IMG/VR virus record: IMGVR_UViG_3300029922_000001
Span: 1-64,000 of that record
Direction: 5' to 3' (one strand)
DNA length: 64,000 nt
The notes beneath the pieces were generated by a model. That model had not been told where the DNA came from and did no database searches. It worked only from the letters and a program-made list of their open reading frames with translations. Of the stretch, positions 4,873 through 53,163 are shown one piece after another. How positions within the stretch are numbered: position 1 is the stretch's first letter; the number at the start of each line of letters is the position of its first letter. Made by a program: the position numbers and the translations under genes.

Positions 4873-5756
4873 TGAAAAGATTTATTAAAGGATTGTATAA
4901 ACCAAATTACCCATGTGTTTTGTCAAGGTATTTTACAAATTTCAGTAAACTCAGAAAGATGAAAATTCTTTCTGAGGACTTCATAGTAGATTTCGCTGAT
5001 GATTTAGATTGGTTTTACCTAAGTGAAGAACAGCCTTTGTCTGAAGACTTCATTCGAAGATTTCAGGATAAAGTTAATTGGCATAATATATCTGAATCTC
5101 AGAAGTTATCAGAAGACTTTATTAGAGAATTTAAAGAAAAAGTTGATTGGTATTATATTTCAATGTATCAGAAGTTATCAGAAGATTTTATGAGGGAATT
5201 TCAAGATGAAATACACTGGCACTATGCGTGTAAACATCAAAAAATGTCCGTAGATTTCATGAGAGAGTTTAAGGATAATATGCTATGGGATTATGTATCA
5301 AAATATCAGAATTTATCAGAAAGCTTTAAACTTGAATTTAGTAATTTCCTTTTCAAGAGAATGTTAAATCCACAAAATAATTGGCTTTATCGCTCTGTGT
5401 ATTCTAAACGTCAGCACCTTTTGGATTATTATGAATTGGATGGTGATTATATTATCGCCTATAAAACTACTCGTAAAAATGGATATTCAGTATTCAATTT
5501 CCAGCATAGATATGAAGTTGGAAAGGAATATGAAGCACATTGTGATTTTAATGCCGATAATGAGGCTAGTTTTGGATTAAGTGCTTGGACTAGAGAAAAT
5601 GCATTAAGATATCATAGTCGTGGTGATCTTTATGAAGTTCGAATTCACCTTGATGATGCTGTTAAAGTGGATAGCTATCACAAGATTCGATGTTCAAAAT
5701 TCACAGTCGTAAGAAAACTAAAGATTAAACGTAGAGAAAGAAAAGCTTCAGACTAA
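4869..5756 (+). CDS. 22-aa Trp-repeat protein (LSEDFIREFxDKVxW) with conserved phage C-terminal domain
   Basis: About six tandem repeats followed by a YKTTR...YEVGKEYE...FGLS domain. Confidence 0.75.
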   Translation: MMKRFIKGLYKPNYPCVLSRYFTNFSKLRKMKILSEDFIVDFADDLDWFYLSEEQPLSEDFIRRFQDKVNWHNISESQKLSEDFIREFKEKVDWYYISMYQKLSEDFMREFQDEIHWHYACKHQKMSVDFMREFKDNMLWDYVSKYQNLSESFKLEFSNFLFKRMLNPQNNWLYRSVYSKRQHLLDYYELDGDYIIAYKTTRKNGYSVFNFQHRYEVGKEYEAHCDFNADNEASFGLSAWTRENALRYHSRGDLYEVRIHLDDAVKVDSYHKIRCSKFTVVRKLKIKRRERKASD

Positions 5757-6553
5757 TTAGTTTGAAGCTTTTCTTTGAATCTTGATATTACATTGAGTAA
5801 ATGTACATTGAGTTTACTATCAATGTCGAGTTCGTCCCAGAGAGGTTGTACTGATTCTGGATACTTTGCTTCATAAAGTGAAGCCGCAATAGCCGCATTT
5901 GTGTCTGTGTCTCCACCAAAGCTAATTGCTAATCTAATTACCTCTTCAATGCTAGTGCCGTTGAAAAACGAATGTAGAATGACTGGCATACAAGCTTCAC
6001 AGCTTGCCATGTGTAATTTACTAATTTTCTTCTTGTTAACTGTTTTCCATTTATAATCGCTAGTTCTTTTAATGAAGTCATTAATATACTTTTTACTTTC
6101 ACCATTGCGAAGATAAAAAATGGCTGCTGCAATTGTATTACTAGCCATTAAAGATTCTTCATGTCTATGTGTATACATAATTGATTTAGTAACATTAAGA
6201 AGAGTTCGTTCAATGGTTTTTTCGGTGTGTCCGATTGGACTAATTCGCATAATACAGCCATTGCCATAACTATCTAATTTAGTCATTTTTTCATGTGATG
6301 GGGTTGATGCCCATGTTCTAAATGCTTTACCATATCCTAGCTTCGGATAGACTTCGTAATATGCTTTATAGTATTCAGCAAAATTTTCTGAAGTGGGTTT
6401 TGGAAATTCTAAAAGAACTTCGGCTGTAGCACAAGTAAGTGCTGTATCGTCTGTAAAGTGAATATTGGGTGTATTCATTTCGAAATTAATATCGACTTCT
6501 GGTTGTGCTTCGAATACACTACCGATAATATCGCCTAAAATAGCTCCGCGCAT
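5753..6553 (-). CDS. ADP-ribosylglycohydrolase (DraG/ARH family)
   Basis: GAILGDIIGS, FTDDT, GNGCIMRISP and GGDTDT motifs; start moved to ATG 6553 (TATAAT-N6-ATG on the minus strand). Confidence 0.9.
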   Translation of the reverse strand: MRGAILGDIIGSVFEAQPEVDINFEMNTPNIHFTDDTALTCATAEVLLEFPKPTSENFAEYYKAYYEVYPKLGYGKAFRTWASTPSHEKMTKLDSYGNGCIMRISPIGHTEKTIERTLLNVTKSIMYTHRHEESLMASNTIAAAIFYLRNGESKKYINDFIKRTSDYKWKTVNKKKISKLHMASCEACMPVILHSFFNGTSIEEVIRLAISFGGDTDTNAAIAASLYEAKYPESVQPLWDELDIDSKLNVHLLNVISRFKEKLQTN

Positions 6554-6590
6554 TATGCTATTATACCTCAATATAAGATATAATAGAGGA

Positions 6591-7055
6591 ATGGAAACTA
6601 AACAAGTCATAGTAGTAAGAACACAATACCCAGATGGGAAAGGTGGAACTAAAAAGCTTAGAACGGGAAAACTCATAGCTCAAGCGGCTCATGCTTCAAT
6701 GTCTTTTTTGACGCGAAGAATTAATGCTAGATTAAATAGTGTTTCATATAAAGATGTTGATGGTGAGCCAATTGCATATATTGTTGAAGGACCATTGTAT
6801 GCAAATTTTTGTTTAACTCCAGAAGAAGAACATTGGTTAGATAATTCTTTTAAGAAAATTTGTGTGTATGTTAATTCTGAAGAAGAATTATTAGATATTT
6901 ATAATAAAGCTAAAGAAGCTGGATTAGAAGTACATCTTGTTGAGGATTCAGGGCTTACGGAATTTCATGGAGAGAAAACTAATACTTGTCTTGCAATTGG
7001 TCCACATGAATCTTCTCGAATTGATGTAATTACTGGTCATTTACCTTTATACTAA
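6591..7055 (+). CDS. pth2: peptidyl-tRNA hydrolase, Pth2 type
   Basis: KQVIVVR, GKLIAQAAHAS, KKICV, DSGLTE, TCLAIGP and IDxITGHLPL; start moved to ATG 6591. Confidence 0.92.
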   Translation: METKQVIVVRTQYPDGKGGTKKLRTGKLIAQAAHASMSFLTRRINARLNSVSYKDVDGEPIAYIVEGPLYANFCLTPEEEHWLDNSFKKICVYVNSEEELLDIYNKAKEAGLEVHLVEDSGLTEFHGEKTNTCLAIGPHESSRIDVITGHLPLY

Positions 7056-7121: not shown

Positions 7122-7149
7122 TTGACAAAACCCAAAAAATGGGTATAAT
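7122..7149 (+). promoter_or_regulatory. sigma70-type promoter of the tRNA operon
   Basis: TTGACA (7122-7127), N16, TATAAT (7144-7149): both hexamers are consensus. Confidence 0.85.
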
Positions 7150-7323: not shown

Positions 7324-7368
7324 GAAAAGGGTTCTCGCTAGAAAAAGTGAGAACCCTTTTCTGTTTTT
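7324..7368 (+). terminator. intrinsic terminator (attenuator) between leader peptide and tRNA array
   Basis: 16-bp stem GAAAAGGGTTCTCGCT/AGTGAGAACCCTTTTC, 6-nt loop, then TGTTTTT. Confidence 0.85.
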
Positions 7369-7384
7369 GAAAATCAAATAAAAT

Positions 7385-7447
7385 GGTAAAGTACATCCGG
7401 TGATGAACCCGTTCTGTGAAAACGGGTGTGGGGATCGGCTACCCCAC
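7385..7447 (+). pseudogene. truncated tRNA-His(GTG)-like element lacking the 3' acceptor strand
   Basis: D stem CATC/GATG, anticodon arm CCCGTT-CTGTGAA-AACGGG and a T-like hairpin; no complement to the 5' GGTAAAG before CGAGA. Confidence 0.55.
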
Positions 7448-7458
7448 GAGATAAAATA

Positions 7459-7530
7459 TCACAATATGGTGTTATGTTGACATACTTCCTGTGGTGGGAG
7501 AGATGTAAGTTCAATTCTTGCTGTTGTGAC
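7459..7530 (+). tRNA. tRNA-His(GTG)-like, irregular anticodon arm
   Basis: Acceptor TCACAATA/TGTTGTGA; T arm GTAAG-TTCAATT-CTTGC; anticodon region CTTCC-TGTGGT-GGGAG (TGG/Pro reading less likely). Confidence 0.6.
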
Positions 7531-7541
7531 CGAGATATATA

Positions 7542-7607
7542 CTAGGATGCCCAAGGTGGGAATTGCGGTTGTGACCCGCAATGACGGGATCGTTACCCGG
7601 TCCTAGA
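7542..7607 (+). tRNA. tRNA-His(GTG), compact
   Basis: Acceptor CTAGGAT/GTCCTAG; anticodon arm TTGCGG-TTGTGAC-CCGCAA; T arm CGGG-ATCGTTA-CCCG. Confidence 0.7.
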
Positions 7608-7619
7608 CGAGAAAAAAAT

Positions 7620-7701
7620 GGCGTAGCGATGCAGTTGGAGAGGCATGACGGTCTGTAAAATCGTTCCTTCGGGTGAATCGGTTCGAATCCGATATGCGCC
7701 A
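7620..7701 (+). tRNA. tRNA-Tyr(GTA)
   Basis: Anticodon loop CTGTAAA; long variable arm CCTTCGGG; T arm ATCGG-TTCGAAT-CCGAT. Confidence 0.85.
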
Positions 7702-7717
7702 CCGAGATAAAATAAAA

Positions 7718-7789
7718 CGGGATATAGCCAAGTGGTATGGCGCGAAGTTAGGGGCTTCGAGTTCTGGTGTTCGATTCACCATATCCCGA
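7718..7789 (+). tRNA. tRNA-Pro(AGG)
   Basis: Acceptor CGGGATA/TATCCCG plus A73; anticodon arm CGAAG-TTAGGGG-CTTCG; T arm TGGTG-TTCGATT-CACCA. Confidence 0.85.
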
Positions 7790-7800
7790 CGAGAATAAAT

Positions 7801-7880
7801 GGACGTATCGCATAGCGGCAATTGCGGAAGGCTGTAACCCTTCTCCTTCGGGTTCGTAAGTTCGAGTCTTACTGCGTCCA
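7801..7880 (+). tRNA. tRNA-Tyr(GTA)
   Basis: Acceptor GGACGTA/TGCGTCC; anticodon arm GAAGG-CTGTAAC-CCTTC; variable arm CCTTCGGG. Confidence 0.9.
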
Positions 7881-7890
7881 CGAGATAAAT

Positions 7891-7962
7891 CTAGTTGTAT
7901 ATCAATTGGTAGATTTCGCCGTTTGGATCGGTGAGGCTGGAGGTTCGAGTCCTCTCAACTAC
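7891..7962 (+). tRNA. tRNA-Pro(TGG), 3' end lacks G72/A73
   Basis: Anticodon arm CGCCG-TTTGGAT-CGGTG; T arm GGAGG-TTCGAGT-CCTCT; acceptor TAGTTG/CAACTA. Confidence 0.75.
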
Positions 7963-7974
7963 GAGATAAAATAT

Positions 7975-8085
7975 GGCGCGTATAGCAGTTACGGTTTTAC
8001 GGTTAGCTGCGCGGTCTGTTAAGTATGGGTATTTAACAAAACCGATGCCGAAAGGCTGATATGGATTCGACTTCCTCACGCGCCA
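7975..8085 (+). tRNA. type II tRNA-like RNA (probably Tyr) with an 18-nt insertion in the anticodon loop
   Basis: Acceptor GGCGCGT/ACGCGCC plus A; variable arm GCC-GAAA-GGC; anticodon region CGGT-CTGT[18 nt]AAA-ACCG. Confidence 0.6.
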
Positions 8086-8173
8086 CGAGATGTATGACGG
8101 TAATTGGCTGCCGCCTGGTTTTGGAAACCAGAGTTATAAAAATACACTGCAAGTTCGAATCTTGTCATCTCGC
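8086..8173 (+). tRNA. tRNA-Pro(TGG) with long variable region
   Basis: Acceptor CGAGATG/CATCTCG; anticodon arm CTGGT-TTTGGAA-ACCAG; T arm GCAAG-TTCGAAT-CTTGT. Confidence 0.75.
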
Positions 8174-8887
8174 GAGAATATTATTTGTTTTTCTTTGAAT
8201 TATTGTTTGAATTAAATCCACAACAATCTTTTTATATTTTTCCTTACTGTTAGTGTTTAAATACTTGCAAGACGATGAATCTATAATACATAATTCAATA
8301 TTTTGTTGATAACAATTTATTATTTTATTATTATCATTATTTTTAATTTTTTCAAATTTATTATTTCCATAAATTGGTTCATAGTGAAATATGCCATTTA
8401 GTTCAATAGCAAATTTAAGCTCTGGAAAATAAAAGTCTAATTCAGAATTAATAATAGATTTATCATTACATATTAATAATAAATCAGGGTATAAAATTTT
8501 AATTTGTTCTTCTAAGTATATTTCTAATTTGGATCTTCTAGTTCCATGAGTTTTATGTTTATTGTTATAAGTTGCTGAACATGATTTACTGCAAAATACA
8601 TTTTTTGTTTTACTTTTATTTAATTCTCCGTTATTTCTTTTTGTGTATTTATTACACTCTTTACAAAAAGTATTTATTGATCCATGACCACGATCTAAAT
8701 TATTTTTATTTGCTACACACTTCATACTACATACCATTGGTCTATTTAATTTATAACTTTCATTAATTTTTGACTTAGCTCTATTGAAAATATTATTACA
8801 CTGAGGACAAATTAATAAAACTAAGTCGTTTCCTCTTAAATTACATATATATTCATTAGGTATATTATTAGCATATGGTATATTCAT
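8165..8887 (-). CDS. free-standing putative homing endonuclease (Cys-rich Zn modules + Vsr/DUF559-like PD-(D/E)xK domain)
   Basis: CxxC...CSxxC repeats; ELDFYFPELKFAIELNGIFHY; start moved to ATG 8887. Confidence 0.7.
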   Translation of the reverse strand: MNIPYANNIPNEYICNLRGNDLVLLICPQCNNIFNRAKSKINESYKLNRPMVCSMKCVANKNNLDRGHGSINTFCKECNKYTKRNNGELNKSKTKNVFCSKSCSATYNNKHKTHGTRRSKLEIYLEEQIKILYPDLLLICNDKSIINSELDFYFPELKFAIELNGIFHYEPIYGNNKFEKIKNNDNNKIINCYQQNIELCIIDSSSCKYLNTNSKEKYKKIVVDLIQTIIQRKTNNILAR

Positions 8888-9860: not shown

Positions 9861-10949
9861 TTAAAATTTAACTTTAATCTTCCTGACATATTGCGGATTA
9901 AGTAAAATAGGCATAGTTTCTGTTGATACTAAATATCCCATATGTGTAGGCGGTTTATCACAAGGAACTGAAGTAATCTTTCCCTTAATAGCATAAGCAC
10001 CAAGAAATTGGGCGGGAGGTAAAACATAAATTTCTCCATCTTCTATATCCGCAGAATAATGCATATCGGTCCATCCATAATGTCCAACAAGTCCTATCAT
10101 CATAATATCTCTCTGTGTACCTTGTTCAAAATCTTTTTCATTAAAGTATTGTTTGCACAACCTGAATGTTTTAGGAGTCATAATCATTTTTGCAGCAAGT
10201 AAATCGTTGTTTTCAATTTCATTAATACTATCTTGTATAGCTCTATCTACAGTTTCCACATAAGTATATATGGTTTGATCAAAATTGGCGGCTTCTTTAA
10301 TAAGTGAAAATATTGCTTGATTTTCTTGTTTTTGGATTGAATCTTTAGCTTCGCATTGCATTTGATCAAACAAATAATATCTTCTTTTATTAAATTCTTC
10401 TGTCGTGACTAATGGGTTGTCTTTAAAAAAAGTGAAATCTTTAATGATTTCTTCATCATTAGGAATATATGGTTTTATTTCACCATTTGAATAGTAAATT
10501 GATTTTGTTCCTTCTTTAATTTGATAAATAGGATCAACACCCGAAGGAAGTTCGTCTACCAGTAATATTTTCCTTGCAACTGATTGATATAGTAAAGATG
10601 CATTAATAGCATCAACCATAGAGTTTCCGAGAGAAATTCTACCTTCTTCAGTAGTGAGTATATGCGCTGTGCTATCACGATAAAATACTGATATTAATTG
10701 GTCTGATGTTAATTCTTTGTGAGATTCTGATAATGTTAGAATGTCATCAGTTAAATTCGTTTGCCAACCAACACTTTGATAAACAATAGAAACTTGTTTT
10801 TTTGCATTAGGGTCTGTGTTTTCGTTAAATCGAAAAGTGAATGGAGCTTCTTCGGAATATGTTTGAAGCTTTTTGTCGATAATGTCAATAAGTTTATTGA
10901 CGGCTGTTTCAACTCTCTTTTGAGAGATTTCTTGTGGTCCTATGGGCAT
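9861..10949 (-). CDS. divergent HK97-fold major-capsid paralog with extra N-terminal domain
   Basis: YQSVARKILLVDELPSG, NP...RRY...AKDSIQKQEN..IF, IExNDL..AK, TQRDI...GLVG and GEIYV..PAQFLG resemble jumbo-phage MCPs; AGGAG before ATG 10949. Confidence 0.65.
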   Translation of the reverse strand: MPIGPQEISQKRVETAVNKLIDIIDKKLQTYSEEAPFTFRFNENTDPNAKKQVSIVYQSVGWQTNLTDDILTLSESHKELTSDQLISVFYRDSTAHILTTEEGRISLGNSMVDAINASLLYQSVARKILLVDELPSGVDPIYQIKEGTKSIYYSNGEIKPYIPNDEEIIKDFTFFKDNPLVTTEEFNKRRYYLFDQMQCEAKDSIQKQENQAIFSLIKEAANFDQTIYTYVETVDRAIQDSINEIENNDLLAAKMIMTPKTFRLCKQYFNEKDFEQGTQRDIMMIGLVGHYGWTDMHYSADIEDGEIYVLPPAQFLGAYAIKGKITSVPCDKPPTHMGYLVSTETMPILLNPQYVRKIKVKF

Positions 10950-12671: not shown

Positions 12672-13289
12672 ATGAAAACGTACCCATCTATTGTTACACT
12701 AAATAAAAATAAAAGCGAACCTATAGAAATGTGGGTATTTGATAAGTTGGATGGTTCTAACTTGCGTTTTGAATGGCATCGTAAGCGTGGATGGGGTAAA
12801 TTTGGCACTAGAACCCGTTTATTTGACCGTACAGACCCTACATTTGGTTGTGCCATTGATTTGTTCTTAAACAAATATAGTGAGGATTTAGAGAGGATTT
12901 TTAGAAAACAAAACTTCGAAGAAACTACAGTATTTTGTGAGTTCTGGGGACAGAGTTCTTTTGCTGGGCAGCACGTTGAAAGCGAACCTAAAAACGTCAC
13001 TTTGTTTGATGTTGATGTATTCAAAAAGTGTATTATTGGACCAAGACAATTTTTGGATTTATTCGGTCATTTAGATCATGCACCATATTTAGGAAAACAT
13101 ATATGGGATCAAGATTTTATTCAGGCAGTATACAATCAAGAAATTGAAGGTATGTCATTAGAAGGTGTTGTTGGCAAGGCTGGCGAAGGTCATCATTTGA
13201 AAATGTACAAGGCAAAAACAAAAGAATGGTTGGATTTGATTCGTGCTAGATACGATGAAGCTACTGCTAATCAGTTAATCAATAGTTGA
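12672..13289 (+). CDS. RNA ligase (Rnl2-like nucleotidyltransferase domain)
   Basis: Motif I KLDGSN, then EFWG, LFDV, EGVV and KAK; start moved to ATG 12672 (TGcTATAAT-N6-ATG). Confidence 0.75.
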   Translation: MKTYPSIVTLNKNKSEPIEMWVFDKLDGSNLRFEWHRKRGWGKFGTRTRLFDRTDPTFGCAIDLFLNKYSEDLERIFRKQNFEETTVFCEFWGQSSFAGQHVESEPKNVTLFDVDVFKKCIIGPRQFLDLFGHLDHAPYLGKHIWDQDFIQAVYNQEIEGMSLEGVVGKAGEGHHLKMYKAKTKEWLDLIRARYDEATANQLINS

Positions 13290-14877: not shown

Positions 14878-16542
14878 ATGAGTAAAATCGCACAATACGT
14901 AGGAAATCGTAATAAAAACAAAAACAAGATCGTCAAACCATATATCTCTCAGGGACAACCTTATGACGAAACACAAGTTAAGAACTCCAATGGAGGATAC
15001 GTATATAAAGTCGGTAATTGGGATCAATTAGTAAGATTTCTCATTTTGGGAACAATTTCAGGAACTTACTACATCAAAGAAAGTGAACTAACTGTTCTAA
15101 ATTATGATGTCATCTTGGATTGTCTCAAAGAAGATGGCGTAAGAGTTGTAAATGAAATTTTGCGTGTGTCTGAAGGTGGATTGGCACCTAAAAATGATTT
15201 TGCAGTTTTTGCACTTGCAGTTGCTGCCGCACATGGTAATGAACAAACTAAACAACTAGCTTATGAAGTCTTGCCAAGAGTATGCCGTATTGCAACACAT
15301 TTATTCCAATTTTTGGAAGATTCTAAAGCATTTAGAGGACGTGGTAACGGTTTTAATCGTGCTATTCGTCGTTGGTACACTAATAAAACCATTGATCAAC
15401 AAGCTTATCAAATGGTTAAATATCGTTCACGAAACAGTTGGTCACACCGTGACGTGTTGAGAACAATACGTATCAAACCAGAAAACGTTGAAGCATCCGC
15501 TTTATATGGTTGGGCTGTTACTGGAGAATGGAAGCCAGGTAAGATTGAAATTAATGTTGATGGTCATGTACTATTACTATCAAATGGCTTTGATGTTGCT
15601 AAGCCAAAGATTATTGAAGGATTTGAAAAGTCCCAAGCTGCTACTTCTACTAGTGAACTAGTTAAGGTAATTAAGCAATATGATCTTACATGGGAAGCTG
15701 TGCCAACACAGTATCTTAAAGATAAGAGTGTATGGGAAGCTTTGCTATCCAACACTCCCCCAATTGCTTTGATGCGTAATCTTGGTAATATGTCTAGTGC
15801 CGGTGTCTTTGATGCTGGTGAGTGGGATAATACCAAATTAGCAATTGATACTTTAACTAATGTTGAAAAACTTAGAAAGAATCATTGTCACCCTATGCAG
15901 TCTGTAATTGCACAAATTACTTATGCTCATGGTGGAGGATTTAAGGGAAGTAACACTTGGGCTGTGAACCCCAAATTAGTCGATGCATTAAATGATTCGT
16001 TCTATGCATCAATGCAAGCAATTGTGCCAACTGGTAAGAAATTCCTAGTAGGTGTTGATGAATCTCAGTCTATGACTCAGGCTAGTGCTGTTTCAGGATT
16101 AAACTGTAAAGAAGCTGCGGCTATTATGGCATTAACTACTTACGTTGCGGAACCTAATTGTCAGGTTATCTTCTTCGATACCAAATATCGTGAAGAAGAA
16201 AAATTGAGTAAGCACATGAGTTTAAATGACGCTAAGAAACTCGCTCGTGATGGTGGAGGTACTAATTTGAACTTACCTATGCAATATGCATTGGATAAAA
16301 AGATTAAAGATATTGATGTCTTCGTTGTCTTCACTGACAATGAGACATATGGTAATGGACGACATACTCAAGACTTATTTAATGAATATCGTAATACATA
16401 TAATGCAAACGCCAAATTGATTGTATGTTCTATGATGGCTAATGTTTATACTGTAGGAGATATTAAAGATCCACAAATTCTTCAAGTAGTAGGTTTGGAT
16501 GCATCGCTCCCGAAAATAATTAGCTGTTTTGTTTTAGCGTAA
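14878..16542 (+). CDS. rsr: Ro60/Rsr TROVE-domain RNA-binding protein
   Basis: QVKNSNGGYVY, LVRFLILG..GTYY, KYRSRNSWSHRDVLR, ALMRNLG; vWA motifs DxSxSM, GGT, VFTDNET and VVGLD; AGGAG SD. Confidence 0.95.
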   Translation: MSKIAQYVGNRNKNKNKIVKPYISQGQPYDETQVKNSNGGYVYKVGNWDQLVRFLILGTISGTYYIKESELTVLNYDVILDCLKEDGVRVVNEILRVSEGGLAPKNDFAVFALAVAAAHGNEQTKQLAYEVLPRVCRIATHLFQFLEDSKAFRGRGNGFNRAIRRWYTNKTIDQQAYQMVKYRSRNSWSHRDVLRTIRIKPENVEASALYGWAVTGEWKPGKIEINVDGHVLLLSNGFDVAKPKIIEGFEKSQAATSTSELVKVIKQYDLTWEAVPTQYLKDKSVWEALLSNTPPIALMRNLGNMSSAGVFDAGEWDNTKLAIDTLTNVEKLRKNHCHPMQSVIAQITYAHGGGFKGSNTWAVNPKLVDALNDSFYASMQAIVPTGKKFLVGVDESQSMTQASAVSGLNCKEAAAIMALTTYVAEPNCQVIFFDTKYREEEKLSKHMSLNDAKKLARDGGGTNLNLPMQYALDKKIKDIDVFVVFTDNETYGNGRHTQDLFNEYRNTYNANAKLIVCSMMANVYTVGDIKDPQILQVVGLDASLPKIISCFVLA

Positions 16543-17384: not shown

Positions 17385-18028
17385 TGACCACAGAATTAGA
17401 ACAGGAAATCAACTCTATTACAAGTTGTTATTATGGTGAATTAAATTGGATTGATATTTCAGTTAATAAAAAATTAAGTGAAGATTTTATAAAAGAATTT
17501 AAAAATAAAGTGAAATGGTATTACATTTCACAATATCAAAAACTTAGTGAAAGTTTTATAAGAGAATTTCAAAATGAAGTATCGTGGGAATTAGGGATTT
17601 CACGTTACCAAAATCTTAGCGAAGATTTTATAAGAGAGTTTAAAGATAAAGTTTATTGGTATAATATTTCACGATATCAAAAACTTAGTGAAGATTTTAT
17701 TAGAGAATTTAAAAATAAGGTTGACTGGACATTTATTACGTCTTGTCAAAAACTCAGTGAGGATTTTATTAGAGAATTTCAAGATAGAATTTTTTGGTGT
17801 AATTTATATCAACCTTTAAGCGAAGATTTTATTAGAGAATTTCAAGACAAGGTTGACTGGTGTAAGGTTTCTAAAAATTCTATATTGAGTGAAGATTTTA
17901 TAAAAGAATTTAAAAATAAAGTGAAATGGTTTTACATTATGGAACACCAAAAACTTAGTGCAGAATTTATTGAACAAAATGTAGATAAATATTATTGGTT
18001 GTCATCATCTAAGCATCATGGACTTTAA
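17384..18028 (+). CDS. 22-aa Trp-repeat protein (LSEDFIREFxDKVxW)
   Basis: About eight tandem repeats, with ~66-nt periodicity in the DNA. Confidence 0.8.
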   Translation: MTTELEQEINSITSCYYGELNWIDISVNKKLSEDFIKEFKNKVKWYYISQYQKLSESFIREFQNEVSWELGISRYQNLSEDFIREFKDKVYWYNISRYQKLSEDFIREFKNKVDWTFITSCQKLSEDFIREFQDRIFWCNLYQPLSEDFIREFQDKVDWCKVSKNSILSEDFIKEFKNKVKWFYIMEHQKLSAEFIEQNVDKYYWLSSSKHHGL

Positions 18029-49527: not shown

Positions 49528-52500
49528 ATGCAACATGATACGAAAAATAATAAGATGAAAACCATATTTGAAGATTCATTTTCGGAAGAAGTTTGGGCAT
49601 CTACATATAAAGACTATAGAGATAACAGTGTAGATGATACGTTTATGCGAGTAGCAACAGCTATCGCTTCAGTTGAAGAAACTAAAGAATTAAAAGAGTC
49701 TTGGGGAGATTCTTTTTTTGATTTGTTACAAAATTTTAAAGGTTCTGCTGGTGGTAGAATTTTATCAAATGCTGGAACTGAATGGGGTGGCACCACTTTA
49801 ATGAATTGTTTCGTAGGTCCAAAAGCAACTTACGATCAAGACTCTTTAGATGGCATTTTAAAAGTACTTAACAATCAATGTAAAACCTTAAAGTCCGAAG
49901 GTGGTTGGGGAATGAACTTTTCATTCATCCGTCCAAGAGGCGCTTTCATTAACGGAATTGGTGTTGAGTCACCTGGTTCTGTTACTTACATGGAACTTTT
50001 TGATAAGAGTTCAGCTTTAATCACTAGTGGTTCAGGCTTAGATACTAAAAATAAAAAAGCTAAAGGTAAAATCCGTAAAGGCGCTATGATGGGCGTTATG
50101 GATGTTTGGCATCCTGATATTGAAGAATTTATTTCAGCTAAATTAACACCTGGTAGATTATCTAAGTTTAATATTTCCGTAAACTGTTCTGATGAATTCA
50201 TGGAAAAGGTTATCTTCGTTAAGGAACTTAGACTAAGTAAGGCAGATCCTGCCCTTATCGCAGAATATGATAAATGGCATTTGGAATTTCCAGATACCAA
50301 ACATGAAAAATATAAAGAAATTTGGAATGGTGATATCAATTATTGGAAGTCTTTTGGCTACCCTGTTAATATCATAAAGACAGTTTCTGTTACAGAATTA
50401 TGGAATCAAATCATCAAATCCACATATACACGTAATGACCCAGGTGTTTTGTTCTTAGATAGAGCAAATGCAACACACTGTTGGAATTATGGAGGTATTG
50501 AAGCACTCATTAAGGCTACTAATCCATGCGTTACTGAGAATACTTGGATAAATACTTCTAATGGTGCCAAACAAGTAAAACAATTATTAAATGATCCATA
50601 TATTGCTATAGTAAATGGGTTACCATATAATGCAACTAGTTTTTGGGAAACTGGAACTAAAAAGGTTTTCAAATTAAATACAAAACATGGATTTAATATT
50701 GAAGTAACCGATAATCATGTTATCAAAACCACTAAAGGTGACAAGCAATTAAAAGACATAAATATTGGAGACAATATTTTGATATCAAATCATAGAAATC
50801 ACACATGGGTAGGGCAGGGAAATTTCAATAAAGGGTGGTTAATCGGTTCTTTAATTGGTGACGGTCACTTGCTTAGTAAAACATCTAAACTAGAATATTG
50901 GGGTCAAGAAAAAGATATAATGCTTCAATATGCATCACAGCTTATACATAAAGAATTTGACGTTAGAAGTGATTTGGGATCTGGTAATTTATCAGGTAAA
51001 ACGGCACAAGAAAGAGATATTACTTCTTTGAGTTGCACTAATTTATTGAATTATGCACATGAACTGAATATTGATAATGATAAATCGTTAAACAATAGTG
51101 ATATTGAAAAAACATCATATGATTTTTATTGTGGATTTTTATCTGGATGGTTTGATGCTGATGGATCAGTACAAGGCAATCACAAAAAAGGTGTTTCTGT
51201 TAGATTATCTTCATCAATTCAAGAAAACCTTTTAGTTGCACAACGTATGTTAAGCAGATTAGGAATTATTTCAAAAATTTCATTACGAAGAAGCGAACAA
51301 GAAAAATTATTGCCAAATGGCAAAAGTGGAAGTTCATATTATACGTGTAAAGCACAATATGAACTTATAATTAGCCAAGATAATATTTCGGTTTTTAGAA
51401 ATATTATTGGATTCAAGCAACCATCAAAACAAAATCACTTAAACATTTTATTGAATACATATACTAGGAATTTCAATAAACAAAAATTTTATAGTGAAGT
51501 TACTTCTATAGAATATATAGGAGAAGAAAAAGTTTATGATTGTACTGTTGATATTGTTCATGAGTTTTGTGCAAACGGTATAAGAGTTCATAATTGTGGT
51601 GAACAATGTTTACCTTTCGGTGCTGTTTGTAACTTATTCAGCTTTAACTTAACTCAGTTTATTGATGAAGTAAACAATTGCTTCGATCTAGAAAAGCTTC
51701 AAAGATATGTTGCTATTGCTGTTAGATTCTTGGATGATATTAATTCATATACTAACGCACCATTACCTGAATATATCGAATCAATTCGCAAGAGAAGAAG
51801 AATTGGATTGGGTGTTCTTGGTTGGGGAAGTGCATTATATATGCTTAAAACTAGATTTGGTTCTGAAAAGGCTGAAGCTATTAAAGAAAAATTAATGCGT
51901 ACATTCACACATGCTGCTGTTAAGGCATCTATTGATTTGGCTAAAGAAAGAGGTATGTTTGCTGGTTGTGATCCAGAAAAACATGCAAATCATCCATTCT
52001 GGCAACAGATCCAACTTGACGATGATACTCTTAGCGAAATGAGACAATACGGAATTAGAAACTCTGCTCTATTCTCTATTCAACCTACAGGTAATACTTC
52101 TGTTCTATGTAACATCGTTTCTGGTGGTCTAGAACCTGTGTTTATGCCTGAGTATATCAGAACAGTTATTGTCAACTCAGTGCCAAATCATATTAAAAAT
52201 GTAACACCCAAATATTGGGAAGGCGAATTCTTCGAAACATCTTTGTTCAAATTTACAAAAGAAGGTGGAGAACAAATTCTTAGAGGCGTTGATACTGGTG
52301 GAGTTGTTTATAAGATTGACAAAAATAGAGGTTTAACCAGAGAAGTATTATGTGAAGATTATGCTGTTAGACACCTTAAACTCAAGGGTGAATGGGATGC
52401 ATCAGCAGATTGGGCATGTACTACAGATAGTTTAACTGTTAATGACCATCTTACAGACATGAAGGGTTTTGGAAAGTGGATAGATTCATCAATGAGCAAG

Positions 52501-53163
52501 ACTGTTAATGTTCCAAATGATTATCCATTTGAAGATTTCGAAAATGTCTATCTAGATGCTTACAAAACAGGCTGTCTTAAAGGAATTACAACTTATCGTG
52601 CTGGTACAATGACTAATGTCTTGGCTGCAAAATCTGAGAAAGATGAAGAAATTGAATTTAAGACTTCTCCTATCATTAAGCGTCCTAAAGAATTAAAAGC
52701 GAAAGTATTCCATCCAACAGCTAAAGGTGGTAAATTCTACGTTGCAGTTGGGTTATTGAATGATAAACCTTTTGAAGTTTTCGTTGGATTAAACACCACA
52801 AATGTTATTCCAATTAAGATGGATGATGCCTCTATTGTGAAAAGATCCAAGGGAGTGTATGATTTATGTGCAAATTCCTTCTGCTATCCCTTAAATACAC
52901 ACTCTGACGCTAACGTTGATGCATTGACACGTATGGTAAGTTTATCTTTGCACTCTGGAGCTAGTTTAGCTCGTGTTGTCGAACAACTAGAAAGAACTAA
53001 TGGAGATATGTTTGTCTTTGCTAAAGTTCTTGCAAGAACTTTAAAGAGATTCATTCCAGATGGTACTACTTTATCTGAAGAATGTCCAGCTTGTGGTGAA
53101 GCGTTAATTCGCCAAGAAGGTTGTAAACGCTGTACTTCTTGTGATTATAGCGTCTGCGGTTAA
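49528..53163 (+). CDS. nrdJ: class II (B12-dependent) ribonucleotide reductase, intein-containing
   Basis: GGRIL, NCF, GGWG, RKGA, TNP|CGEQ, RRIGLG, QPTG, SKTVN and KGITTYR; C-terminal TSCPD-like domain and Zn ribbon. Confidence 0.92.
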   Translation: MQHDTKNNKMKTIFEDSFSEEVWASTYKDYRDNSVDDTFMRVATAIASVEETKELKESWGDSFFDLLQNFKGSAGGRILSNAGTEWGGTTLMNCFVGPKATYDQDSLDGILKVLNNQCKTLKSEGGWGMNFSFIRPRGAFINGIGVESPGSVTYMELFDKSSALITSGSGLDTKNKKAKGKIRKGAMMGVMDVWHPDIEEFISAKLTPGRLSKFNISVNCSDEFMEKVIFVKELRLSKADPALIAEYDKWHLEFPDTKHEKYKEIWNGDINYWKSFGYPVNIIKTVSVTELWNQIIKSTYTRNDPGVLFLDRANATHCWNYGGIEALIKATNPCVTENTWINTSNGAKQVKQLLNDPYIAIVNGLPYNATSFWETGTKKVFKLNTKHGFNIEVTDNHVIKTTKGDKQLKDINIGDNILISNHRNHTWVGQGNFNKGWLIGSLIGDGHLLSKTSKLEYWGQEKDIMLQYASQLIHKEFDVRSDLGSGNLSGKTAQERDITSLSCTNLLNYAHELNIDNDKSLNNSDIEKTSYDFYCGFLSGWFDADGSVQGNHKKGVSVRLSSSIQENLLVAQRMLSRLGIISKISLRRSEQEKLLPNGKSGSSYYTCKAQYELIISQDNISVFRNIIGFKQPSKQNHLNILLNTYTRNFNKQKFYSEVTSIEYIGEEKVYDCTVDIVHEFCANGIRVHNCGEQCLPFGAVCNLFSFNLTQFIDEVNNCFDLEKLQRYVAIAVRFLDDINSYTNAPLPEYIESIRKRRRIGLGVLGWGSALYMLKTRFGSEKAEAIKEKLMRTFTHAAVKASIDLAKERGMFAGCDPEKHANHPFWQQIQLDDDTLSEMRQYGIRNSALFSIQPTGNTSVLCNIVSGGLEPVFMPEYIRTVIVNSVPNHIKNVTPKYWEGEFFETSLFKFTKEGGEQILRGVDTGGVVYKIDKNRGLTREVLCEDYAVRHLKLKGEWDASADWACTTDSLTVNDHLTDMKGFGKWIDSSMSKTVNVPNDYPFEDFENVYLDAYKTGCLKGITTYRAGTMTNVLAAKSEKDEEIEFKTSPIIKRPKELKAKVFHPTAKGGKFYVAVGLLNDKPFEVFVGLNTTNVIPIKMDDASIVKRSKGVYDLCANSFCYPLNTHSDANVDALTRMVSLSLHSGASLARVVEQLERTNGDMFVFAKVLARTLKRFIPDGTTLSEECPACGEALIRQEGCKRCTSCDYSVCG
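50527..51594 (+). mobile_element. intein with LAGLIDADG endonuclease (356 aa)
   Basis: Begins CVTENT, has a block B TDNH, ends VHN before the catalytic Cys; LIGSLIGDG and FLSGWFDADG motifs. Confidence 0.93.

Follow-up and report, generated by a model that had tools for sequence, protein, structure and literature searches.

Why should nine otherwise dissimilar tRNA elements, standing one behind the other in a phage genome, all be followed by the same five letters, CGAGA, and none of them encode CCA? The question is raised by an array near 7.4 kb in the DNA analysed here (the window, 64,000 nucleotides (nt) long), which is the start of IMG/VR virus record IMGVR_UViG_3300029922_000001 (441,498 bp, 34% G+C) and comes from peat metagenomes. 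The initial annotation of this array offered two answers: a dedicated 3'-processing signal, which would make tRNA maturation depend on a specific nuclease plus a CCA-adding enzyme, or the scar of a cassette-like mechanism that assembles and shuffles tRNA genes. We find CGAG after nearly every tRNA of this phage, at many separate loci, and we find the same four letters purged from the sense strand of its open reading frames (ORFs). With moderate confidence, we read CGAG(A) and the A/U-rich stretch behind it as an RNA-level cleavage signal at the 3' edge of stable RNAs.

CGAGA follows every unit of the array

The initial annotation placed CGAGA at nine sites, after nine of nine elements without an encoded CCA, and this description holds throughout. 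The motif stands on the + strand at every one of these sites (Table 1), each is preceded by a tRNA or tRNA-like fold according to ARAGORN, the Rfam tRNA model and folding, and none of the nine units encodes CCA. Nine same-strand occurrences in 731 nt compare with about 0.27 expected (Poisson P ~1e-11), and there is no overall enrichment in the window, where both strands together hold 34 copies against 46.4 ± 6.4 expected. ARAGORN calls units 3-7 at its default settings and units 2-7 and 9 at a relaxed threshold; the Rfam tRNA model calls units 2, 5, 6 and 7, and unit 9 weakly. Unit 8 is detected by none of these callers (ARAGORN default or relaxed, Rfam tRNA model); in its fold an acceptor stem of 7 bp and a T arm can be recognised, and a long closed arm stands where the anticodon loop would be. 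Between units, the spacers measure 4-15 nt.

The point at which tRNA and motif join had been described as variable, and most of the individual calls are borne out: the motif follows N73 and a C in units 2 and 4 and N73 itself in units 3, 5, 6 and 8; in unit 7 the Rfam tRNA model places the C and G of the motif at positions 72 and 73, and in unit 1 a T-like hairpin is followed by A and then CGAGA. The call that has to be revised is unit 9, where the motif had been placed after N72. ARAGORN pairs GAGAUG (8087-8092) with CAUCUC, which leaves G73 and then CGAGA, an ordinary N73 junction. This acceptor strand starts directly after C8086 of the unit 8 motif.

The mark recurs across the genome

The record that contains the window is part of a larger genome. 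A 521,591-bp European Nucleotide Archive (ENA) contig starts 30 nt ahead of window position 1 and is identical to the window in sequence; its final 18.6 kb correspond to a 78-kb Joint Genome Institute contig from the same peat sample, and a further 15-kb contig can be joined through a 141-nt overlap and repeat genes. The phage genome is at least 521 kb, and probably about 536 kb with the 15-kb piece, which has repeat genes on its flanks. The IMG/VR record is rated 100% complete, yet it is not the entire genome, since the ENA contig contains it. Two contigs with the same trailers (L132 and L134) that might have been a second, independent phage are both parts of this genome; the ENA contig runs into that of L132.

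In the 441-kb record, (C)GAGA follows 23 of 24 tRNAs called by ARAGORN, at eight separate loci. The initial annotation had proposed a search for CGAGA after the other tRNAs of the genome, and over the roughly 490 kb examined the answer is clear: CGAG follows 38 of 39 ARAGORN tRNAs at no fewer than eight loci, the endings being CGAGA (35), CGAGU (3) and CCA-CGAAA (1), at a place where chance would put CGAG after less than 1% of tRNAs. No motif precedes the first unit of the arrays at 7.4, 172, 253.6 and 275.7 kb, and one stands downstream of the last units of arrays and of lone tRNAs, which assigns it to the 3' end of the unit. Over 64 sites anchored on the T loop the consensus is CGAG-A-W-A-A-A-U, where CGAG is invariant by selection, the next two positions hold A in 49/64 and W in 57/64, and the three after these hold A in 40-41/64 each.

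What lies between the tRNA and its mark can be read off by numbering the positions from the T loop. The C of the motif occupies position 74, directly preceded by N73, in 28 cases; position 75 in 15 cases, with C74 in 14; and position 77 in seven, with CCA in six. In six further cases it lies at position 73, where it is itself the discriminator, and in three at positions 71-72, where the motif overlaps the acceptor stem. The insert between discriminator and CGAGA is thus almost always nothing, C or CCA, i.e. a prefix of CCA. Essentially all units have C74 and 14 have C74-C75; the six or seven units elsewhere in the genome that encode CCA have CGAG directly after it.

The mark is found beyond tRNAs. 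Plain hairpins carry it 0-3 nt from their 3' side, often with a promoter-like TGnTATAAT a few bases on, and a non-coding locus of 1.5 kb (355.0-356.5 kb) is punctuated by CGAGA. Within this locus, a tandem series of four to five units, each about 60 nt long, stands behind a TGgGTATAAT promoter (genome 355,040-355,400; L164:12540-12900). Their invariant UUCUCG and CCGAGA are able to pair, a second stem co-varies between units, and the pseudoknot-like arrangement is reminiscent of the RNA repeats of type III antitoxins. CGAGA also bounds several non-coding stretches, 60-340 nt long and matching no Rfam family, at 355.5-356.5 kb (L164:13000-14000), 172,369-172,712, 316.8-317.2 kb and 389.3-389.6 kb; they are probably small RNAs of the phage that have not been described. 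A search for RNase P RNA and other Rfam families returned only tRNAs (Rfam gathering scores over about 424 kb, which is the 441-kb record without its final ~19 kb, with permissive scores at three loci).

The core of the mark is purged from phage messages

If a four-letter word has a function in RNA, its use in messages may be informative. We counted words in 500 non-overlapping ORFs, which cover 87% of the 441-kb record, and took expected counts from synonymous-codon shuffles. On the sense strand CGAG occurs 81 times against 287 expected (ratio 0.28, z -14.5) and is the most depleted non-palindromic 4-mer; sense CGAGA occurs 29 times against 99.7 ± 9.4, and antisense CGAGA 84 times against 89. 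By a maximal-order Markov estimate, CGAG stands at 0.33 and its complement CTCG, for which the ratio overall is 0.75-0.87, at 0.87. The depletion is seen in all three frames, in every NCGAG and CGAGN context (0.09-0.46) and in each 20-kb bin, and the density of CGAG in non-coding DNA is 3.3 times that in coding DNA.

What could produce such a pattern at the level of DNA? A Type III-style orientation bias is excluded by the minus-strand genes, which deplete their own sense CGAG (0.47, against 0.22 in plus-strand genes, with CTCG at 0.75 on both), and a replication-strand bias by the genes oriented against their neighbours, which are still depleted (CGAG 0.38-0.44 versus CTCG 0.77-0.93). Codon-pair effects do not account for a depletion in all three frames, and general loss of CpG does not account for related words that stay at 0.8-0.98 (CGAA 0.94, CGAT and CGAC 0.8-0.86); TGAG and AGAG stand at 1.0-1.1. 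Avoidance of restriction through the palindromes TCGA and CTCGAG can be part of the effect only, as ACGAG, CCGAG and GCGAG are depleted too. With these causes excluded, a purge that spans strands, frames and contexts points to the transcript.

The other strongly depleted words are palindromic restriction sites and Shine-Dalgarno-like words. Many restriction palindromes are nearly absent (GGCC 1 against 203 expected; CAGCTG, ATCGAT, CTGCAG, CCATGG, GGATCC and CTCGAG all 0), and the asymmetric pair GAGGAG/CTCCTC also has a count of 0.

A proposed cleavage signal

Drawing on these observations, we infer that the RNA is cut at the mark, and we propose the following course of events. Multi-unit transcripts would be made by a host-type RNA polymerase. 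In every stable phage RNA the mark would be single-stranded and would come right behind the terminal helix, this helix being the acceptor stem with its discriminator in tRNAs and a plain hairpin in the others. A sequence-specific endoribonuclease would cut at the 5' edge of the motif, on either side of its C, leaving tRNAs with N73, N73-C(C) or N73-CCA ends. The host CCA-adding enzyme would complete these ends, with minor trimming by 3'-5' exonucleases, and RNase P would make the 5' ends.

Were the motif cut at its 5' edge, the resulting ends would either be finished by a CCA-adding enzyme or already be complete. A deeper cut, within the motif of unit 8, would destroy unit 9, because the 5' strand of unit 9 starts right after C8086. 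C74 is known as an anti-determinant for RNase Z, and its presence at the junction fits a nuclease other than RNase Z. If the bare four-letter core is enough to do harm in a message, the phage would have had to remove CGAG from the sense strand of its ORFs, as we propose it has. Finally, the genome uses ordinary bacterial signals, to judge by a perfect TTGACA-16-TATAAT promoter at 7122-7149 and a hairpin-plus-U intrinsic terminator at 7324-7361, just ahead of the array, and with sigma-70-type promoters and an intrinsic terminator flanking the array CGAGA need not be a terminator.

Which enzyme would do the cutting? In the 441-kb record we find no match to CCA-adding enzymes (PolyA_pol, PF01743; NTP_transf_2, PF01909), to the nuclease families Lactamase_B_2 (RNase Z), PIN, ParE/RelE, RNase III and RNase E/G, or to RegB (PF10715), the last even at E<=1; PemK/MazF (PF02452) is likewise absent, with about 95 kb of the genome outside this search. 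With no phage CCA-adding enzyme found, completion of CCA must fall to the host enzyme. What the phage does encode is a set of proteins that act on RNA ends. Just upstream of the arrays at 172 and 253 kb lie genes for an Rv2179c-like 3'-5' exoribonuclease and a Tpt1 2'-phosphotransferase, respectively; in the window there are a PTH2 peptidyl-tRNA hydrolase right before the 7.4-kb array and a Ro60/TROVE protein 7 kb past it; an RNase_T-family protein, a CYTH protein and two proteins like RNA ligases are encoded as well. Several of these RNA repair and end-processing genes directly adjoin tRNA arrays. The RNA-end enzymes of the phage fit trimming and repair, not sequence-specific cutting. One candidate for a reader of the motif, a 206-aa protein (354,369-354,986) beside the CGAGA-rich locus with a weak Atlas likeness to T4 endonuclease IV, was set aside: it has a 63%-identical homologue in a relative in which sense-strand CGAG is plentiful and the trailer is CCA+UUUU.

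Since the trailer is not seen in any bacterial genome, we judge it somewhat more likely that the nuclease is encoded by the phage and belongs to an unrecognised family than that it comes from the host. More tentatively still, a phage endoribonuclease of an undescribed family that cuts CGAG might shred host mRNAs, in which the site has its ordinary frequency, spare the purged messages of the phage, and release phage tRNAs and small RNAs ready for CCA; the UUCUCG...CCGAGA units at 355 kb could then be a decoy or a timer.

Relatives and other genomes lack the mark

Is this arrangement shared with other phages? Relatives of the same family, found with a TerL profile at 37-50% identity, have CGAG ratios of 0.67-0.95, apart from one 13.5-kb sample at 0.43 in which control words are also low. 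Their tRNAs end in CCA and an A/T-rich stretch (G006) or in U-rich trailers (G008, G009, G011, G012), and the CGAGA trailer is never found at the tRNA ends of the same-family relatives examined. Two distant huge phages (TerL 27-28% identical) have CGAG at 1.04 and 1.18, and show either CCA+AUUU at their tRNA ends or no trailer shared between tRNAs. In the first 50 kb of T4, CGAG stands at 1.18 and GGAG, which is the RegB target and also a ribosome-binding word, at 0.50. An unrelated huge phage of 448 kb (G002; contigs L116 and L117) has a stereotyped tRNA trailer of its own, CCA and then AUUU, and trailers of fixed sequence may recur among the tRNA arrays of phages.

Wider searches do not change this picture. 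No systematic CGAGA trailer is found elsewhere among 2.9 million viral contigs (three patterns, chance matches only), 185,579 species genomes yield 11 loci with one or two such tRNAs each, about the number expected by chance, and the metagenome contigs scanned return only this genome and sporadic pairs. As far as these collections go, the trait is confined to this one phage. DNA contigs from four other peat samples carry the array with identical sequence.

Alternative explanations

One alternative is a nuclease of the host. A housekeeping or defence/toxin endoribonuclease that reads CGAG would have led the phage to purge its messages, and the phage would have borrowed the enzyme to release its tRNAs; we regard this as unlikely. 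Phages are known to rid themselves of the targets of host enzymes, this phage has done so for many restriction sites (GGCC among them, as above), and the nine families of nucleases and CCA-adding enzymes are missing from the phage record, all of which suits a host enzyme. A host that uses CGAGA for its own tRNAs should, however, stand out among the species genomes scanned, where the few loci amount to chance, and same-family phages from similar samples show no purge. For a defence nuclease, moreover, the placement of its site after every tRNA is left unexplained.

Could CGAGA after a helix instead be a stop or pause signal for the polymerase that the phage uses, or for a factor acting on it? 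The hairpins that bear the motif have no U tract and often have TGnTATAAT next to them, and a stop signal would also predict avoidance within ORFs. Spacers of the length seen in the array are, however, too short for one promoter per tRNA, the CCA-prefix rule would be meaningless for a terminator, and the motif of unit 8 doubles as the 5' strand of unit 9. Ordinary sigma-70-type promoters and hairpin-plus-U terminators are present at the same locus, and relatives carry sigma-factor genes. We hold this explanation to be improbable.

We give as little credence to a third possibility, in which a general host RNase cuts the A/U-rich spacer and CGAGA is a stop or landing mark for 3'-5' exonucleases, its C blocking RNase T-like trimming. 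Such trimming is known to be blocked by C residues, which fits the invariant C before GAGA, and the phage encodes both the Rv2179c-like exoribonuclease directly upstream of the 172-kb array and an RNase_T-family protein. Left without explanation are the need for GAG after the C and the purge of CGAG but not of TGAG, AGAG or CGAA.

The weakest explanation is that CGAGA is a DNA-level scar or target of cassette-type recombination or homing that assembles tRNA arrays: a DUF559/Vsr-like endonuclease gene abuts the array and other arrays have TnpB genes and an HNH gene nearby, but we reject the scar of the initial annotation as very improbable, since it cannot explain an avoidance that tracks the direction of transcription gene by gene on both strands, a motif that follows lone tRNAs and plain hairpins and has no inverted-repeat partner, or the CCA-prefix rule, and the identical arrays of the other peat samples have neither gained nor lost units.

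Returning to cleavage at CGAG, the dedicated 3'-processing signal of the initial annotation is favoured, if indirectly, by 38 of 39 tRNAs, by the non-tRNA RNAs, by the sense-strand purge and by the CCA prefixes. Several points weigh against it. The phage CCA-adding enzyme or RNase that had been hoped for is represented by none of the nine families in the 441-kb record. Nine of about 60 units (six with C at 73, three at 71-72) depart from the junction rule, and no single cut position yields a correct end for every unit: a cut before the C of the motif suits the CCA class, a cut after the C suits the position-73 class, and neither suits the three units in which the motif overlaps the stem. Support is computational and comes from the sequence statistics of a single genome, to which the extra contigs belong, and so from a single lineage. 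The ORF call behind the word counts is crude, the examined sequence is that on either side of about 45 kb (roughly 449-494 kb of the ENA contig), and only a minority of the ORFs were scanned.

Features of the array and its surroundings

The units of the array and the features around it are collected in Table 1. The promoter-like element ahead of unit 1 is, by its match to the consensus, a probable start of the array transcript. Unit 2 (7460-7530) has an anticodon that can be read as GUGG; an anticodon loop of eight nucleotides is the form known from frameshift-suppressor tRNAs. A Ro60/TROVE-vWA protein is encoded at window positions 14878-16542, 7 kb past the array, and together with the cloverleaf of unit 8 (7975-8085) it resembles bacterial Ro with its tRNA-like Y RNAs, although the topology is unlike that of YrlA.

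Table 1. Features of the tRNA array, its flanks and the RNA-end genes of the phage (window positions unless marked otherwise).
Feature	Position	Strand	Description	Evidence
Promoter-like element	7384..7392	+	Extended -10, TGgTAAAGT; just after terminator 7324-7361	Consensus only
Unit 1	7399..7451	+	Half-tRNA: anticodon-like hairpin (loop CUGUGAA) and T-like hairpin, A, CGAGA 7447-7451	Fold
Unit 2	7460..7535	+	tRNA-like, 8-nt anticodon loop; A73 (7529), C (7530), CGAGA 7531-7535	Rfam 35.8 bits; ARAGORN relaxed
Unit 3	7542..7612	+	tRNA-His(GUG), 66-67 nt, reduced D and T arms; A73, CGAGA 7608-7612	ARAGORN, fold
Unit 4	7620..7707	+	tRNA-Tyr(GUA); A73, C, CGAGA 7703-7707	ARAGORN
Unit 5	7718..7794	+	tRNA-Pro(AGG); A73, CGAGA 7790-7794	ARAGORN; Rfam 56.5 bits
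Unit 6	7801..7885	+	tRNA-Tyr(GUA); A73, CGAGA 7881-7885	ARAGORN; Rfam 50.4 bits
Unit 7	7890..7966	+	tRNA-Pro(UGG); CGAGA 7962-7966 overlaps body, C = position 72 (C-C mismatch), G = 73	ARAGORN; Rfam 45.9 bits
Unit 8	7975..8090	+	111-nt tRNA-like cloverleaf; A73, CGAGA 8086-8090	Fold -41.3 kcal/mol, z -3.15
Unit 9	8087..8177	+	tRNA-Pro(UGG)-like, long variable arm; G73, CGAGA 8173-8177	Rfam (weak), ARAGORN relaxed, fold
Neighbour gene	8165..8887	-	DUF559/Vsr-type (homing-type) DNA endonuclease-like; converges on array end	ESM Atlas feature score 0.98, TM 0.76 to viral DUF559/zf-FCS clusters
RNA repair/end-processing genes (PTH2, two RNA-ligase-like, Rv2179c-like, Tpt1, CYTH), as a group	Window 6465-7055, 12672-13286; genome 171,321-171,836, 253,906-254,463; L175:6317-6835, 9985-10542

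The gene that converges on the end of the array has a product without a Pfam match; from its modelled similarity it looks like a DUF559/Vsr-type endonuclease, and we take it as context only, not as a member of the CGAGA system. It is adjoined by a lone HK97-fold capsid-like gene (9864-10949, minus strand) on the strand opposite to its neighbours.

Other tRNAs of the genome have features of their own. Two have a CUA anticodon, which would read the amber stop (genome 172,128-172,200 and 353,602-353,673), and hint at reassignment or suppression of this stop codon in infection; ORF lengths compared between genetic codes point clearly neither way. Three of about 100 nt contain insertions, perhaps introns, within or close to the anticodon arm or the variable region (genome 245,891-245,993, minus strand; 172,713-172,810; 275,383-275,484, minus strand), and the first of these is followed by CCA-CGAGU. 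Near tRNA arrays there are two TnpB (OrfB_IS605/Cas12f-like) genes (genome 276,283-277,272; L173:10739-11899).

Elsewhere, a gene family built of 69-nt (23-residue) tandem repeats occurs in several copies (genome 364,084-364,789; window 4968-5345 and 17400-18025; ends of L132, L134 and L175), and these genes are the points where assemblies break. The large subunit of ribonucleotide reductase (window 49528-53163) is split by an intein with a LAGLIDADG endonuclease domain.

Discussion

To which known systems does such a signal compare? By analogy, the closest would be T4 RegB. The RegB/S1 site covers 11 nt of single-stranded RNA, in which GGA is invariant and an A-rich tail follows (PMC1702504). 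The phage mark has, like it, a short invariant purine-rich core and a degenerate A-rich stretch, and in both cases the core is rare in the phage's own ORFs. The differences are that the core is CGAG and not GGAG, that it lies at the 3' ends of stable RNAs whereas RegB acts at ribosome-binding sites of early messages, that the purge is stronger (0.28, against 0.50 for GGAG in T4), and that no RegB homologue was found. In the tRNA operons of E. coli, RNase E cuts 1-3 nt after the encoded CCA and exonucleases trim the remainder (PMC2190699). Here too the proposed cut falls just 3' of each tRNA, in multi-tRNA transcripts with A/U-rich spacers, but the E. coli operons encode CCA and have no fixed sequence mark, whereas the phage units mostly lack CCA and have CGAG, and RNase E/G was not found.

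Substrates of the Bacillus type of RNase Z resemble the nine units of the window, and most units of the genome, in being CCA-less and leaving completion of the end to a CCA-adding enzyme. No trailer motif is required by RNase Z, however, and C74 and C75 disfavour it; the phage units have a motif and C74, and the relatives that lack CCA show the usual U-rich trailers. MazF-type interferases cut a single-stranded site of 3-7 nt anywhere it occurs and let site-free transcripts escape, which the sense-strand purge fits. The 441-kb record has no PemK/MazF homologue, we know of no MazF with CGAG specificity, and the use of a MazF-type site as a tRNA maturation signal has not been described. Cas6 in CRISPR and ToxN in type III toxin-antitoxin systems release tandem units at a fixed point, as might happen in the motif units of about 60 nt at 355 kb with their possible pseudoknot; there the whole repeat is conserved, whereas the phage units are unrelated tRNAs and varied hairpins that share only a mark of about 10 nt.

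As in the tRNA punctuation of mitochondria, structured RNAs would mark the cuts in a polycistronic transcript, but in mitochondria the tRNA fold is the signal for RNase P and RNase Z, whereas the phage adds a sequence mark after the fold and also after plain hairpins. Unlike an integron-like cassette site, the word is avoided according to gene sense on both strands and its array is identical across samples; unlike an intrinsic terminator, such as the true one at 7324-7361, the motif is followed by an A-rich stretch and not by a U tract.

Full-text literature searches found no description of a CGAGA trailer. Read as a sequence-specific RNA-processing signal, the mark would be of a known kind, and what would be new are an undescribed specificity and an unusual double role. 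If it is a cleavage site, a recognition sequence of four to five letters awaits its matching enzyme, and with it a new RNA-processing specificity. A small sequence-specific RNase of this sort might be a tool for releasing multiplexed tRNAs or guide RNAs, in the manner of Csy4 or MazF. A short motif that every stable-RNA end requires and that ORFs exclude is also a signature for detection, since the DNA of any genome is enough to look for it. Giant phages carry dozens of tRNAs, and through such a signal this phage would, by a strategy new among them, free the maturation of its tRNAs from the usual 3' pathway of the host and make its own messages immune to the nuclease.

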